From Adineta vaga (Eukaryota > Animalia > Rotifera): a DNA stretch of 64,000 bases. Position 1 is the first letter of the stretch, and the number at the start of each line of letters is the position of its first letter. The position numbers and the translations under genes are program-made. Positions 45,984 through 55,063 of the stretch are shown here, one piece after another. Location of the stretch: positions 4,774,001-4,838,000 of the forward strand of contig CP075497.1 of the NCBI GenBank assembly GCA_021613535.1. The letters run 5' to 3'. The notes beneath the pieces were generated by a model. That model worked only from the letters and a program-made list of their open reading frames with translations, was not told where the DNA came from and made no database searches.

Positions 45984-46955
45984 TTAAAAATAATCACCTT
46001 GCCAAAACGTCGCATGTCCACTTAGATAAGCATCTTTTATTTTGTCTAAAATTTGTTGTGATAATCGAATATTTCGAATCATGGTATGATCATTTTTACT
46101 GACAGTTACAACACCAGCCCATTGATCTAATTCTTCTAAACTCATATATTGTGGTACAGTATGAAAACGAATGGTTTTGATCTGTGGATGTCGTCGATGA
46201 ATTTCATTTGCTGCTAATTTTAACAATTTCTTTTCCATATCAGCATTTGATGCTCGCCATTCTGATACATAGATATTTTCTACATTGTCTGGATGAGTAA
46301 TAACAACATAACTTTGTTCTGATAATAAGTATATAATTGTATTTTCTTTTCGCCAATTCCAACCAACCCAATGTTCAAACATGTTTACTGGCGATCGATT
46401 AAATTGATAAGTTCGAGGTTTAGTTGAATGAATATCGAGTAGAAGTTGACAATTCGATGAGAGTAGATTATTTATTGAACACCAATGTTGATGATTATCT
46501 CCTGATGAACTAAAATGATTCCATTGAACACTAATCGGTGATGGTAAAGAGATTGGTTCCCAACCAAGAACTGCATAATGTTTCGGTCGTCCAGTACCTA
46601 ATACTGATATATCAAATTGTTTACTTTGTTCCATCTTTTCAATAGCCATTCGTAATAATTCACGTGAATAGCCATGTCTTCGATGTTCTTCTAAAGTTGC
46701 AACATTTGCTATTGCACCACATAGATATTCTGTATTATCATCACGAGATCGAATATATAGACGTCGAATATGTACTGCACTAACAAGTTTCTCATCGAAC
46801 CAAGCACCTAAAGTGTCACCTTGTTGATAGAAAGGTGATGCTTCTTCAGTGAAATAACGTTCGAAATATCCTGGTTGAGTTTTAAATACGGCATACCATA
46901 AATCGATCGCTTGTTGTTGTTCATGTTTTTCAACAGGACGATAAATAACTGACAT
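45984..46955 (-). CDS. GNAT-family N-acetyltransferase (Eis/Acetyltransf_9-like N-terminal domain), intronless, probably non-metazoan in origin
   Basis: 323-aa single ORF. LVSAVHI...GAIANVATLEEHRRHGYSRELL (acetyl-CoA motif A) and HYAVLGWE (motif B). Confidence 0.85.
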   Translation of the reverse strand: MSVIYRPVEKHEQQQAIDLWYAVFKTQPGYFERYFTEEASPFYQQGDTLGAWFDEKLVSAVHIRRLYIRSRDDNTEYLCGAIANVATLEEHRRHGYSRELLRMAIEKMEQSKQFDISVLGTGRPKHYAVLGWEPISLPSPISVQWNHFSSSGDNHQHWCSINNLLSSNCQLLLDIHSTKPRTYQFNRSPVNMFEHWVGWNWRKENTIIYLLSEQSYVVITHPDNVENIYVSEWRASNADMEKKLLKLAANEIHRRHPQIKTIRFHTVPQYMSLEELDQWAGVVTVSKNDHTMIRNIRLSQQILDKIKDAYLSGHATFWQGDYF

Positions 46956-47665
46956 GTTAATTTTCTCTACTTAAATGAATACTATCTAAGAAAGATAAAT
47001 TACTAATAAGAGAAAAGAGAATAGTATATCAAATCTATTGAATATCAGTCTGAATGACAACGAATTATTTAATCGTCGTTACATTTATAAAGTAAACTTT
47101 GCATCTATACTCTATGTTATGACTAAATTCTTTCTCGTGTACAAAGTCTGCTTTTCACCTATATATGCTCTACCGTTAGAGTAGATATTTAGTCTTTATC
47201 ATAAAATAGAAAAAAAGCGTTATTTACGTATAACAAAGATACGGTTGTTTTGTGTTTGTAAGTGTACTTTGTACTTCTACTTTGGAGTCATAGACTCGCG
47301 TATATTGCCCTTTTGAGTGAAAGTTATTATTCTATATATAGACAAATATTTCGAAAGTAAAGATGGAAAAGTTCCAAGAATATGAGGTGTCGCTGACTCT
47401 ATTGAAGGAGATATTAAAGGATAAAAAGTTTACTATTTGTCCTACAACGGATAATGTTGTAAACTTATACTTTTTTTTTACATATTTCAATGATTCATAA
47501 CGGGATATTTTGATGTCACTCCCTTTTCTAGAATGGAAACTTCTGAAATAAAAGACAATAAAAATTTTGAGTATTTTCTTTCAAACCCATGCTTGAATAT
47601 ATATAAAAAAAACTTCAAATATCTGTCAAAATCATATAGAAAATCAGTTTAAAATACAATTCATC

Positions 47666-50600
47666 TTATCCTGTATTTCTAAGACCTGCTGCAATTCCTG
47701 CCATAGTAGTCATCATTGCTCTGGAAATATCTGCTGGTATATCATTCTTATTCTTATTAAGATTTCGTTGCATTAATTCAGCTTGTAAGCCATGCAATGG
47801 TTCAATGTAAAGATTACGTAATGAAATAATATGTGCAAGTTGTGGTGCTCGTTCTAATATCTCTTTCTGATCCGTAATATGAAGAACAAGTTCACGTATA
47901 TGATGAAGTCTTTCACGTAAAGATTCACTTAATTTTTGCATGGACGAATTTGGTTCAATGAGTCGTTGTTCATAGTAGGCAGTAATATCTGTATCTGCTT
48001 TAGCAAGAACCATTTCAAGCATATTTATATACATTCGAAAGAAAGGCCATGATTTAGTCATTTCACGTAAACGTTCAATACCATCTTGATTTGTTTTGAG
48101 ATATTCATCGAATGCATCGTCTGTACCTAACCATGCAGGTAACATGAGTCGAATTTGTCTATAAAAAATCGATATGAATAAAGTAGAATCGAACTTTATG
48201 GATAGTTATACGTACGTCCATGCAAATATCCAAGGAATAGCTCGTAATGTTTCAACACCACCATCTTGTTTACGTTTAGCTGGTCGAGAACCAAGTGGAA
48301 GTTGTGAAAGTGCATTCAATGGAGTAATTCTTCGGAAATATGGAACAAAATCTGGATTCTTACGAATAATTGAATTGTAAGTTTGATGTGCTCGACTTGC
48401 TAATTTGTTCATTTCTTCACGCCAAGTCTCTTTTAATGTTGGCATTGGTAGTAAAGTTGCCTCTAAAACAGCACTGGCATAGATTTCCATGGATAGAACA
48501 GCTAAACCAGGTAAACCGAATTTAAATCGAATCATTTCACCTTGTTCTGTTACACGAATACTATTGTTAACTGAACCGGGTGGTTGTGATAAAATAGCTA
48601 AGAGATAAACGATCAAAATCCTCTGTTTATCTATATTTCTTCAATATACCTGCACGTGCTGGACCACCACCTCTACCAACGGTACCACCACGACCATGAA
48701 ATAATGTTAATGCAACACTATGCTTTTGACATACTTCTAATAAACGTTCTTGAGCTCGATATTGTGCCCAAGCAGCTGCTAATTGACTAAAATAGAAAAA
48801 AACACAAGAAGATTTCTTTTGACTACAGAAATCTTTATCTTTATCTTTACCCTGCATCTTTCGCTGAATCAGAATATCCAATCATAACTTCTTGTTTATT
48901 ATTAATAAGTTCTCGATAACCTTCAATAGATAACAATCGATCAATAACAACACTTGAACGATCCAAATCATCCAATGTTTCAAATAATGGTGCAATCTTT
49001 GATAGAATACTCGGATAAGAAATGAACAACATCACAAAGAATTCTTACGGGTAATGTTTTTCCATTGGCCATTTCTTTCATAAATAATGCAACTATTAAG
49101 ACATCTGATGGTTGTCCTGCCATTGATATGACATAAGTTCCTAGTGCTTCTTTACTATGTTTTCTTCCAATAATTTGAAACGTATCTAAAACTTCTTGAG
49201 TATCTGCTGTCCATTTTTGTCGATACGGTATCAATGGTCGTTTAGAAACAAGTTCTTGAAGTAAAAAAGTTTGTTTTTTCTCTTCATTCCATTCCGAATA
49301 TTTCTCTTCATTAGGAAGAATAAGTGATAAAATTTCTTCTAAAGCTTCCGTATGTCGTGTAGATTCTTGTCGTAAATCAAGTTTTGTTAGAGTAACACCA
49401 AAACAAGCTAAACGACGTAGTGTATCCAATAAGATACCATTAGCAATCAGATTCAGTTTATTTTCACATAATGATCGATAACAAATTTCTAAAGGTTCTT
49501 GTAATTGTTTATATGAATGAATTAAATTAGTATTTTCAGGAATTTCAAACGTTTTTGCATCTAATTGAGCTTTTAACCAATCACGTGTTGTTCGAGTTTG
49601 ATGTATTAATCGTTTTAAAAGAACTCGATAAGGTTCCTTTGCATTTTTATCATCGATTAAATTCAATAACTCATCTCTATAAATTAAAAAAGAAAAAGAG
49701 TTGTGAAATCCATTCTTTCTTTCTAGAAATGTTGTGTAACATACGAAGCTTTAGTCATGGATAATTGATCTTTAAGATTTTCCAAATCAGAAATATAAAG
49801 TTCAGCTGCTTGCCAACGTGCAAGTAATAAAACTTCTGTAGTTACAGTAGCAGTTACATTTGGATTACCCTAAATAATGTTAACAATCATCACGAATGAA
49901 TACTAGTTATGCGAGTAAAGACTTACATCTCGATCACCACCCATCCATGATGCAAATCGAATTGGTGAGGCATACAATGGTAAACGTTTACCAGTTGTTT
50001 CAAGAAGTAAATGATCGAGATTTCGTGAAAAAGTTGGAAGTGCTTTCCAAAGAGATGTTTCAATAACAGCAAAGCCCCATTTTGCTTCTACGAAATCAAA
50101 AGATATGAATGAATATCAATCGTTTTCATACAAAAGCACAGATTTTACCATCAACAGGTGATGGTTTTTCGGTTCGAAATTCATTCGTATGCCATGCTTG
50201 ACTAATTAATTCTTCTAAACGTTCCTTGGTACGTTGAACCGTTCTAGAAATAGATCTGGTATCATTTTCAATATTTAACATTTCAAGTACTCCTAAACAT
50301 TCTTCAATCAAATCATATTTTCGAATTAATGTTCGTCGTATTGTTTCTGTTGGATGTGCAGTTAAAACTAAGTCAATCCTCATTTTCGAAAATGTTTCAT
50401 ATAGTAATTCTTTTGCATTGTTCTTTTCTTTTTCAACATGTTTAAATACATCGATAAGTGATATACCATTAGCTCCACTACGATTGTAATCATCGATTCT
50501 TTTCGAATGAACTCGATGATGTTGTTCAGCAATATTAGTTAATTGAAGAAATTGATTAAATGCACGTGCTACCGGTAAGAAATGTTTCTCGGGAAGATTG

Positions 50601-50982
50601 CGTAAATAATTATGCAGTTGTGCTCCATTATCTTGTCGTTTTGCATAAGTACGAATTGTTTCGATTTTTCTAAGAAAATCTTCACCTAAATCATGAACAA
50701 TCGTTCTTCCAAGACTATCACCAAGTAATCGAATGTTAGCACGAAGTGATTCATCAACGAGATTATTTTCATTTTTGGGAGCTGGTGAATCTTTGGACGA
50801 TGCAAAAATATCCCATTGATCAACTACAATCGAAAAGAATTTTAGTTATTTCGGTATAAACAGAAGTAGATGAAAATCAATGTCTAGTATAACTTACTAT
50901 TATTATTATTATTATTCAAAAATCTGAATTGATCTTTCACATTTGTCGATGATAATAAAAGACACCGGGAAGTACGAAGCAT
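47666..50982 (-). CDS. ppc: Phosphoenolpyruvate carboxylase, bacterial (gammaproteobacterial-like) type, 9 exons
   Basis: Phase-consistent exons 50898-50982, 50149-50823, 49927-50087, 49745-49869, 49049-49676, 48851-48996, 48650-48786, 48216-48597, 47666-48158. Motifs [78 protein letters not shown]. Confidence 0.96.
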
Positions 50983-51482
50983 CCTATCCTGTTATCCACA
51001 GTCACTGTATATTATTGATATCAGATAAATTCTACTCTCTCACTCACTCTTAATTCAGTTTATAGTCACCACTTCTATTGTGTAGTATTTTTTCTAAGAC
51101 ATTCCTATCGTTCAGACAAAAACCAATCGTTTTTTCTCTCTTTTGAAAGAAAAAAAAAGAATAAATAAATAGTAGCATATATACATTTTGCTAAAGAGGT
51201 CACTATTTACGTCTCATAGTTGAAATCGATTCATATATGTTTATAAATTTTCAAAACATCCATTTTTTAAAGTTATAGAAACTTATGTAAAAATCTCTTT
51301 ATATAATTATTCATATATATGTATATAATTAAGAATAAAAAACGAATCGTATGAAAAGAAATACATGACACATGAGCACACAATTTGCTGAGTAAAACAT
51401 AAGACACTGTTTCAAAATGCATATCAAAATGACAAAGAATACCCGATAGAAAGGAAATAAGAATGAATAGAAAAGAATCTTT

Positions 51483-54400
51483 TCAAATACTGTATTCTCG
51501 TGATGTTGAACTCATTGCTGAGGACGATATTATCGATGAATGTTTAGGATAATTTACAGTTGTTGGTGGAGGAGGTGGTGGTGTATCAATTGAATCGTAA
51601 GTTAAATAAGTCGATTGTAAATCTGCGACAGGTCTCCTCGTTAATGATTGTACAGTTTTTCTAAAATTCGAATGAGTTGATGACGTCGACGATGTTGCAG
51701 GTGAATGAAATGTTTTTAAATGATGTGGTTGTTGTTGAATATTATCATCATTATGACCAGTTGATTGATGAATACCTACAGTAACAGCCGTAGATGATTT
51801 GTTATTAAAGGATGATTGATGTCGTTGAGCTGGTACAGCATAATCAACACTTGTTGAACTTAAACTTGATGAACGATGTTGAGCAGTAAGGAGAGGTCGT
51901 GCAACAGCGTGAGCACTTGAACTTGATCGAGATAAATCATTACTTCCATAACAACTATCTTCCGAACTTCCAGCACTACCACTACCAACACACGTTTTTA
52001 TATCATCATAAGGTTCAAGATGATGATGTCCAATTGCTTTCTAAAAGAAAACAAAACATTATATATATATGTCACTTTAAGTTAACTAGATGTGGCATAT
52101 ATCATGTCAATATATTTTACGGCTCATTTCATTGATGTTTCATAAACAAAACGGACTAACAAATATTAATAATTATGTAAACAGAAAATGTATATTCTTT
52201 TCCATATATGATCATTTGTTGTTCAAATGTTAAAGAGTATTCTAACCTTTTGATCGAATTTAACTATCGATATTCGGATTAAACTCTATCAATGTTCACA
52301 CAGTTAGATTAAGTGATATATAAAAAGGTAACCTTTAGATCAAATTAAAAGACATGATATAATCGAACATACTTTCGTTGCTGTTAGAAGTTTGTCAGCA
52401 TCCGTTGATTGAAGTAATTCACATGGTTTTGTTAATGATGCTCGATGTAAATGTCGACAACGTTTTTGTTTACAAAAAAAAGCGATTAAAATTCCCATTG
52501 TAATACTAAAGATTAATGTTAATATTGTCGATATGATTACAACAAGAATCATTTCACGTGTAAAAATCGTATCTTGTTCGTGTGAATATTCTTTTCGTTG
52601 AATATCATCTTTTGATAATTGTTCAGATGTTAATGAAGCTGTATAAAATAATTTCTCACTATATTCACCAATTTTTATATTAACGTTTGTTGTTGAACAT
52701 TTAGAAATTGATTCACCTTGATCACATACTTTTATTGTTAAACGATGATGTCCTTGTGGTAAATTATTAGATTGACCATAGATTGTTCCATTATATTCAT
52801 TGATATGAAAGTATTCATTTTGATTGCCATCAATTATAGTATAAGTTAAGTTTCCATTCATTCCATCATCACGATCGTGTGCATTGATTGTTGTAATCAT
52901 AATGATTTTTGTTACATTTGTTGGTACTAATTCACTTGGAATATAGATTGCCGATGGCGAATCAATAATTGGTGCATTATCATTGATATCAATTAATTCA
53001 ATTGTAACTGTAATACGATCCGAATGACGAGAATCATTATCTTTAGCAGTTATATATAATCGATGTATAGGATGATTTTCATAATCAAGTAAAGCTTTCG
53101 TACGTAATTGTCCATTTAATAGATTGATTTCAAAAACATCTTGATCATCAATACATGTTAATTCATAATGAATTGTTGTATTCATATCACGATCAATTGC
53201 TTTAACTTGACCAATTAATGTTCCAATAGGAATATTTTCTTGAACATGATAGGAATAAGATTCTTGTTCAAATTTTGGTCGATTATCATTCGTATCATTT
53301 ATATAGACAATGAATGAATGAAGAGTTTCAAGACGTTGAGGATGTGTACCATGATCACTAATATTTAATATTAAATCATATTTCGATTGAGATTCATAAT
53401 CAAATGAAATATTATTTCCAACAGAAAGAATTCCAGTACGAGAATCGATTTGAAATAATTGAGAATTATTTGATAGAATAAGAGAATATGTTAACAGACT
53501 ATTTGATGTATTCGGTGCATCAAGATCTTGTGCATGAAATTGAACGAGTTGAGTATTTGGAAGATTATTTTCATTAATACTTATCGGTGTAGGATATGGA
53601 TCAAGTATTGGTGGAGAATCATTAATATCAATAAGAAGAATCGTAATATCTTTTTGCGTAGTTAATGATGGTCCAGTACCTGGATAAGAGACAAAAAATG
53701 ATGGTCTTTTTTGTTTCGAAAAAAAAACGAGCAAAATTTTCTTACCTTGATCTCTTGCTTCAAATGTCAAACGATATTGTTCTTGTTGTTCTCTATCAAG
53801 TCTTCCAATGATCGATAAACTATATAGATCATTAAATTGTTCATTTAATTGAAATAGATTATTATATGTTAATAATTTCAAGATGATTTTATCATTGATA
53901 GAATCTTTATCACTAACACTTAAATGGAATAAACGTGTATTTACAGGTTGTTCTTCTTCAATATAGAAAATATGTTTTCGTGGATCAATTTTACTGGGAT
54001 CAGCGTCCGGTAAAATAAAATCAATATCTGGTGGACAATCGTTAACATCAAGAATATCAATTTGAATTTGTGTATAAACATTTATTGCATCCGGTCCATT
54101 ATCTCGTGCGCGTATATTGAATCGATAGCTTGTTTCATGTTCATAATCTAGCATTTGACGAACTTTAATAACACCTGTTGTTACATTGATTTCAAATGGA
54201 AATGATGACGATGGTGTATCGGTAATAATTGTATAATTTATTAACGAATTCAATCCTTCATCATTATCATAAGCATGTATATGAAGAATATCTGTTCCAA
54301 TTAGTGTATCTTCACGCAATTTTATATGATATTGTTCATGTTCAAATTTTGGAACATTATCATTTGAATCAAGAACTTGAATGTCAAGTGATAGTGTACC

Positions 54401-55063
54401 AGACAATTCACCATCAGTAGCTAAAATTTTCATTTTATAAAAATTTCGTGTTTCACGATCAAGAGATTTTAATAGACGTAGTCCAAGTTGGTTTTCTGTA
54501 TGTAAACTAACGATTGCAAATGTTTGTAAAAGATCTTCATCAATTGTTTCATCAGATGGTAGAATTCGATATTCGAGACGATCTTGATAATCAAGGTCAG
54601 TTGCTGATGGAAATGATGATACATGACCAATATCGGTATTTTCGGATAGACGTATCTGAAATGTTGAGACAGGAAATTTTGGTTGATTATCATTGATATT
54701 TTCAATAGTAACATCTAATGATAATATATCAATAGTTTTTGATGATGCGATAATTTCTAAGGTTAATACACATCGTTCACAATTGCATATATGTGTTTGA
54801 CATAGTTCTTCACGATCAATCATACGTTTAACAGAAATACGTCCCGTTAAAGAATCAATCATGAAGAATGAATTATGTGGACTGGAATCGGATATAAATG
54901 AAAATTTATATAAATTTGATGAAGATGAATAAACACGACTTAGATCGTAGATAGATGTTCCAATGGAACTCTGTTCTTTCAATGAAATTGGTGATAAACG
55001 TTGAATTGCCGTAGAAATGGATTGAAGAATAAGGAGAAATAGGAAAAATTGAATCACATACAT
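51483..55063 (-). CDS. Delta-type protocadherin (7 cadherin repeats, TM, Ser-rich tail)
   Basis: Signal peptide, EC1 with DREELC...C, six DxNDxxP-type linkers separating seven EC repeats, TM ILVVIISTILTLIFSITMGILIAFF. Exons 53746-55063, 52373-53679, 51483-52040. Confidence 0.9.

Follow-up and report, generated by a model that had tools for sequence, protein, structure and literature searches.

A 64,000-nucleotide stretch of chromosome 6 of the bdelloid rotifer Adineta vaga (positions 4,774,001-4,838,000 of an assembly with six chromosomes and 100.8 Mb; the whole stretch is referred to here as the window) carries, at 47666-50982 on the minus strand, a gene for phosphoenolpyruvate (PEP) carboxylase (PEPC). 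The interpretation that best fits our findings, to which we assign a probability of about 0.9, is that this gene is the A. vaga ortholog of the bacterial Ppc-type PEPC (EC 4.1.1.31), acquired from a gammaproteobacterium related to the Halomonadaceae and since domesticated. On this interpretation, an ancestor of the sampled bdelloid rotifers took up ppc horizontally from such a bacterium, and the gene was integrated within a block of ordinary metazoan genes. After the transfer it would have acquired eight short spliceosomal introns and a new first exon, which added the only usable start codon and an extension of ~48 residues, and its codon usage would have drifted toward that of the host. An earlier annotation of this DNA (the original prediction) had already proposed an old horizontal acquisition, and the proposal is now supported by the tree, the introns, the codon composition, the synteny, the selection on the gene and its spliced transcripts.

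To our knowledge, PEPC is generally held to be absent from animals. No animal group is better known for foreign genes than the bdelloid rotifers, and they are the one well-supported exception to the rule of PEPC-less animals, in print since 2012. In that year Boschetti et al. (PMC3499245) included EC 4.1.1.31, of eubacterial type, in their list of enzyme activities that A. ricciae expresses from foreign genes, and placed the PEPC transcript (contig 60355) on a genomic contig shared with 32 metazoan transcripts, so that the core of our finding was already known. Peng et al. 2012 (PMC3521007) accepted no animal PEPC as credible beyond such cases, the earlier matches being fragments or contamination. 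Like the gene described here, that of A. ricciae is eubacterial, is transcribed in a bdelloid and has metazoan genes linked to it. The A. ricciae paper described neither the gene structure nor the donor lineage and did not analyse the N-terminus, and its transcript may match either the canonical PEPC studied here or a second, divergent PEPC-like family. In the literature that we searched, we did not find the donor sister group, the conservation of introns and synteny, the presequence-like exon, the indel shared with a GNAT gene or the second family. With a named sister group, introns older than the split of the sampled families, an apparently recruited exon and a two-gene block, the A. vaga PEPC is a fully documented case of domestication, and these details enable concrete experiments on how the enzyme is used and where in the cell it is located.

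The nine exons of the gene (Table 1) join into a coding sequence (CDS) of 2832 nt for a protein of 943 aa, and in this model, built from window DNA, the frame is open up to its one stop codon, which is terminal. All eight introns run from GT to AG and are short (74, 61, 57, 68, 52, 64, 52 and 57 nt). The original prediction of a complete open reading frame (ORF) over nine exons with eight GT-AG introns was borne out, and the two models agree to the base at start and stop. At window position 47667, several of the sequencing runs give a TGA stop codon and not TAA, a silent strain or allele difference. Database searches were made with single exons, while the joined model was used for local alignment, for the trees and for the ratio of nonsynonymous to synonymous substitution rates (dN/dS). 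Single exons matched the Pfam family PF00311 (PEPcase) with E-values from 1e-17 to 1e-54, and in a six-frame search of the assembly the exons jointly covered positions 1-919 of that profile, each match being above the cut-off. Exon 5 alone scored 160 bits over 209 aa against PRK00009, whose NCBIfam equivalog cut-off of 815 bits applies to the whole protein. For exons 2, 5, 8 and 9, each searched singly, E. coli Ppc (1FIY) was a better match than any of the plant PEPC structures, and over 876 aligned aa the full protein shares 49.5% identity with E. coli Ppc.

The original prediction had described the catalytic motifs as intact, and in the alignment with E. coli Ppc all 14 of the functional residues that we checked are conserved (H138, R396, E506, D543, K546, H579, R581, R587, K620, R699, R713, K773, R832 and N881), with a near-identical local context around each. 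The catalytic His of the TAHPTE motif is residue 185 of the rotifer protein and its seven-residue context is identical, as it also is in the orthologs on two metagenome contigs, L009 and L010; the context of the metal ligands E506 and D543 is likewise identical to that of E. coli. The orthologs keep the same functional residues, 14/14 in L009 and all 10 of those covered in L010. PEPCs of this family convert PEP and bicarbonate to oxaloacetate and phosphate, irreversibly and without biotin or ATP. Because the gene is transcribed, spliced and strongly selected, and because every checked residue is kept, the A. vaga protein most likely still catalyses PEP carboxylation. An alternative would be a conserved protein that is no longer a PEP carboxylase, i.e. 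a regulatory or moonlighting pseudoenzyme, and the divergent second family does demonstrate how far the fold can drift in bdelloids. This we consider very unlikely, given the intact residues in all three lineages and a dN/dS of ~0.05 across the whole length. The aspartate-site residues are among those retained, and the protein is probably under bacterial-style allosteric control.

The likeness to E. coli Ppc (PDB 1FIY, 1JQN, 1QB4) thus extends over the catalytic His, the glycine-rich loop, the metal ligands, the aspartate site and the RNTG end; unlike it, the A. vaga gene lies on an animal chromosome, is divided by eight introns, has an added exon and a ~48-aa extension, and uses AT-rich codons. 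Both the RNTG C-terminus and the N-terminal helix motif are present. With the plant enzymes, of bacterial type (BTPC) and plant type (PTPC), it has the Pfam family and the reaction in common. Plant BTPC, like A. vaga PEPC, ends in RNTG and has no N-terminal phospho-Ser motif. The protein is not of the plant type, as its N-terminus is unrelated, its end is RNTG and not QNTG, and it falls outside the plant clade. The original prediction was also right that the plant N-terminal phospho-Ser motif is missing, the unrelated extension of ~48 aa standing instead before the counterpart of E. coli residue 7.

The resemblance to proteobacterial Ppc noted in the original prediction was supported, the rotifer sequences lying inside the gammaproteobacterial type. 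A library search with exon 5 returned two rotifer fragments (82% and 72% identity), followed by PEPCs of bacterial length at no more than 47%. The named bacterial matches were from Marinobacter, Pseudomonas, Haemophilus, a gammaproteobacterial metagenome-assembled genome, Porphyromonadaceae and Spirochaetia, and the longer, eukaryote-type matches included a grass and a chytrid PEPC. Full-length sequences were used for a quick tree of 67 rows and a careful maximum-likelihood (ML) tree of 30 rows, and both nest the rotifers in the gammaproteobacterial clade: the rotifer clade (100/100) sits within a clade of 13 rows (99/97) that includes E. coli, Haemophilus, Marinobacter and Pseudomonas. A word search gave partial proteins with the labels Halomonadaceae and Halomonas, which have 58-60% identity to the rotifer PEPCs over ~550 aa. 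When partial sequences were included in a careful ML tree of 36 rows, the rotifers, Didymodactylos among them, formed one clade (98/96), sister to Halomonadaceae-like Ppc with support of 100/100, and Didymodactylos branched first within the rotifer PEPC clade, matching the expectation from the species tree.

A source in another eukaryote, such as an alga, a protist or an oomycete, or an ancient eukaryotic PEPC that was kept vertically, would account for the introns and the eukaryotic expression signals of the gene. Some protists also carry bacterial-like PEPCs, and some of the metagenomic rows of the trees might in fact be eukaryotic. We nevertheless regard such a source as highly improbable. 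PEPCs named as plant or chytrid group in a well-supported clade of their own, and in an approximately unbiased (AU) test on the 30 rows, forcing the rotifers to group with the eight eukaryote-type rows cost 115.6 log-likelihood units and was rejected (p 1e-40), so that the ML phylogeny suggested as a check speaks against a grouping with eukaryotic PEPCs. The nearest bacterial relatives lie on ordinary bacterial contigs (with RelA, MazG, RlmD-like and KefB), and the length of the protein, its added N-terminus aside, is bacterial. Within the sample, this separate clade takes in the plant-type sequences and the other eukaryotic PEPCs with names, from grasses and a chytrid; the trees contained no identified plant BTPC. 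The chytrid sequence, a PEPC of 980 aa from Thoreauomyces humboldtii, is an observation in its own right. Fungi are said in an older paper to be without PEPC.

The age of the gene can be read from its orthologs. On L009, a contig of 272,904 nt from a metagenome in the European Nucleotide Archive (ENA), PEPC has the complete nine-exon structure, with all eight introns at the positions and phases found in A. vaga and an intact frame. On L010, a metagenome contig of 4.8 kb with 31% GC, the gene breaks off in exon 8; the seven introns covered again agree in position and phase, and the frame is intact. A contig of Didymodactylos carnosus (GC 32-37%, without a long ORF) contains exons 5-7, interrupted at the same two points as by introns 5 and 6 in A. 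vaga, and named partial PEPC gene models exist for A. steineri, Rotaria magnacalcarata and Rotaria sp. The Didymodactylos introns together with the A. steineri and Rotaria models imply that PEPC, with some or all of its introns, was already present before the sampled bdelloid families diverged. The proteins of A. vaga, L009 and L010 are ~77% identical in pairwise comparison. The ML dN/dS for these lineages, which had been suggested as a check, was 0.05-0.06, a rough value because dS is saturated (>2), and indicates strong purifying selection. Between the window and the contigs assembled from the runs there are 22 synonymous, 9 nonsynonymous and 9 non-coding differences. L009 differs strongly from A. 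vaga in base composition, the locus having 46% GC and its PEPC 49% G+C at third codon positions (GC3), vs 14.5% in the A. vaga PEPC.

The A. vaga PEPC gene is transcribed and correctly spliced. Introns 2-8 are absent, at the exact predicted sites, from contigs assembled from runs X1, X5 and X10, which come from three studies, while the contigs of run X8 retain the PEPC introns and that run behaves as DNA. Since the gene has a single locus, mRNA is the best explanation for the intron-free contigs. The transcript contigs span from at least 51077 to ~47617. For intron 1, the coordinates of the X10 contig (153 + 27 letters before exon 2) are consistent with its removal. Of the splice junctions that the original prediction had wished to see supported by RNA, those of introns 2-8 were thus found directly, and that of intron 1 by contig coordinates only. 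These transcripts also bear on the possibility that the gene is bacterial contamination or an assembly artefact, which could be entertained given that PEPC is otherwise unknown in animals and that earlier animal matches turned out to be fragments or contamination (PMC3521007). A contaminant would not be expected to have eight spliceosomal introns, nor transcripts from which they have been spliced out. Its GC3 of 14.5% is host-like, close to the 11.7% of the adjoining cadherin gene and far from the 46-70% of bacterial ppc genes; the locus lies 4.8 Mb into a chromosome of 13.9 Mb, flanked by metazoan genes; and the same neighbours occur on L009, an independent contig of another lineage. In our view the chance of an artefact is close to negligible.

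Several points weigh against the interpretation of a domesticated gammaproteobacterial ppc and temper its individual parts. The closest bacterial proteins are partial, metagenomic and named by their depositors, so that 'Halomonadaceae-like' denotes the sister lineage, not the donor itself. The group constrained in the AU test was fixed after the tree had been seen, the hypothesis itself coming from the original prediction. The choice of the 14 residues and their roles follows the E. coli structure papers and not the output of a program; their conservation was computed. That runs X1, X5 and X10 are RNA is our guess, and their contigs give no expression level; the junction of intron 1 lies inside a masked AAT repeat and is backed by contig arithmetic alone. 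The saturation of dS noted above belongs here as well.

The part of the protein for which bacterial Ppc offers no counterpart is its beginning. Exon 1 contributes 28 codons to the extension of ~48 aa and the beginning of exon 2 another ~20; the alignment with E. coli Ppc starts at about residue 50 of the rotifer protein (E. coli residue 7). The 5' untranslated region (UTR) has an in-frame stop four codons before the ATG and no upstream ATG, and the next Met is residue 176, which makes exon 1 the sole start that gives a complete enzyme. The exon has an equal position and phase in A. vaga, L009 and L010. In all three lineages the first 28 residues include 4-5 that are basic and 0-1 that are acidic, with an amphipathic stretch, in a protein of which the remainder is ~13% acidic, and the maximum helical moment is 0.58-0.75 on a crude measure that is not a trained predictor; by the same crude measure, these residues have the composition of a presequence in all three. 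Identity among the lineages is 29-44% in the exon 1 region, vs 78% in the rest of the protein. A copy of exon 1 from another host gene was considered and rejected, as the DNA of exon 1 and the 5' UTR matches only itself genome-wide.

In these features the extension behaves like a targeting peptide, and most like a mitochondrial presequence; the odds that it is one are about even, in which case it could send PEPC to the mitochondria. The fuller proposal, that exon 1 is a working presequence which places a bacterial, irreversible and biotin-independent step from PEP to oxaloacetate inside mitochondria, beside pyruvate carboxylase and PEP carboxykinase (PEPCK), is possible but on the doubtful side. 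If true, a mitochondrial PEPC would mean that an anaplerotic or anaerobic branch point has been rewired, which might help on entering or recovering from desiccation. Alternatively, the enzyme may be cytosolic, like bacterial-type and plant PEPCs, and its extension an incidental result of how the gene obtained its eukaryotic promoter and start codon, without a role in targeting. It is general knowledge that enolase makes PEP in the cytosol and that the known eukaryotic PEPCs are cytosolic, and the poor conservation of exon 1 fits with this; yet the basic, low-acidic and amphipathic properties persist despite the fast-changing sequence, as is typical of presequences, and the exon stays at an equal place and phase in three lineages. 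We would put the prospects of a cytosolic enzyme in even balance.

PEPC would be an extra anaplerotic or PEP-branch-point route. Ohnolog pairs are evident from paired loci, those of pyruvate carboxylase on chromosomes 2 and 5 and the four of PEPCK on chromosomes 1/4 and 3/6; with both enzymes retained, PEPC would add a route and replace none. It could refill the tricarboxylic acid (TCA) cycle, or it could commit glycolytic PEP to the oxaloacetate-malate branch. That branch is used by many invertebrates under low oxygen. The roles suggested in the original prediction, in anaplerosis or in metabolism under hypoxia or desiccation, stay at the level of inference. The 2012 paper (PMC3499245) paired PEPC with a 'PEP synthase' and proposed carbon fixation. 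The sole PPDK_N locus in the A. vaga genome (Table 1), presumably that 'PEP synthase', scores below every NCBIfam cut-off; it matches PRK06241 and models of the rifamycin-phosphotransferase type, and the rifamycin phosphotransferase model ranks as its second full-length match, behind two 'PEP synthase' subfamily models. Judged by these matches, its product may not make PEP. A path from pyruvate through PEP to oxaloacetate with a PEP synthase partner is consequently not relied on here, and the carbon-fixation proposal is weakened, since its candidate 'PEP synthase' is below every curated cut-off.

Two further A. vaga loci match PF00311 and represent the second PEPC-like family, which is ~20% identical to the PEPC studied here, has altered catalytic motifs and has no RNTG end. 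The family is conserved in A. ricciae (84%), Rotaria (71%) and Didymodactylos (68%). Its nearest non-rotifer relative, at 45%, is encoded on a Gram-negative bacterial contig, which points to what is probably a separate bacterial acquisition.

The surroundings of PEPC are those of an animal chromosome. The original prediction had named TFAP2 and a protocadherin as neighbours, and both were recovered, as a TF_AP-2 match and an ORF with cadherin repeats. The database matches with names for neighbouring or paralogous genes come from A. vaga, A. ricciae, A. steineri, Rotaria and Didymodactylos. On L009, the 273-kb contig of a distant bdelloid-like lineage, the order cadherin-PEPC-GNAT is kept. By tblastx, both flanks of the window are collinear with an ohnologous region of chromosome 3, where the cadherin ohnolog is 69% identical. 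The block from ~45.6 to 51.4 kb, containing GNAT and PEPC, has no counterpart there, its place being taken by 3.6 kb in which there is no ORF of at least 100 aa. The absence of the block from chromosome 3 means that the two genes occupy one indel, and either they were inserted on chromosome 6 or they were lost jointly from chromosome 3. A decayed PEPC copy on the ohnologous chromosome was rejected, as the best tblastn hit against 32 kb around the cadherin ohnolog had an E-value of ~3.

Table 1. Features of the PEPC locus, its neighbours and related loci elsewhere in the A. vaga genome; positions are those of the window unless a chromosome is given.
Feature	Position	Strand	Description
5' UTR	50983..51077	-	At least 95 nt, collinear with the genome; X10 contig reaches 51077
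Exon 1	50898..50982	-	28 codons including the start; no bacterial Ppc counterpart; basic, hydrophobic
Exon 2	50149..50823	-	End of extension, onset of Ppc homology, catalytic His (H138 = residue 185)
Exon 3	49927..50087	-	Gene model, profile match, transcript contigs
Exon 4	49745..49869	-	Gene model, profile match, transcript contigs
Exon 5	49049..49676	-	Central region; Arg equivalent to E. coli R396
Exon 6	48851..48996	-	Metal ligands, equivalents of E. coli E506 and D543
Exon 7	48650..48786	-	Glycine-rich loop; equivalents of H579, R581 and R587
Exon 8	48216..48597	-	Equivalents of K620, R699 and R713
Exon 9	47666..48158	-	C-terminal region: equivalents of K773, R832 and N881 (aspartate site), RNTG, stop
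3' UTR	47617..47665	-	~49 nt; transcript contigs stop here
Cadherin gene	52340-55063		Upstream of PEPC; 907-aa ORF, seven cadherin repeats, transmembrane tail
TF_AP-2	~37.8-38.2 kb		Metazoan neighbour
GNAT (Acetyltransf_9) gene	45984..46955	-	Intronless, 323 aa, directly downstream of PEPC
Divergent PEPC-like gene	Chromosome 4:14417216-14418715 (L005:538-3303)	-	Intronless 922-aa ORF, PF00311 match
Divergent PEPC-like gene	Chromosome 5:16588350-16589252 (L006)		PF00311 match
Sole PPDK_N locus in genome	Chromosome 5:10635166-10636083 (L019:3376-6135)	-	920-aa intronless ORF

Bdelloids have an expanded GNAT family, for which the A. vaga genome has at least five more matches, three of which are interrupted by stop codons, and the nearest non-rotifer protein-atlas clusters are all bacterial, which is a lead only. 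A transfer of PEPC and GNAT together found no support, as the bacterial contigs L017, L018, L025 and L026 have no Acetyltransf_9 gene beside ppc. In the interval between PEPC and the cadherin gene, the stretch at 51383-52058 matches chromosome 3 by tblastx with up to 76% identity over 63 codons, which suggests that it holds a small gene or exon.

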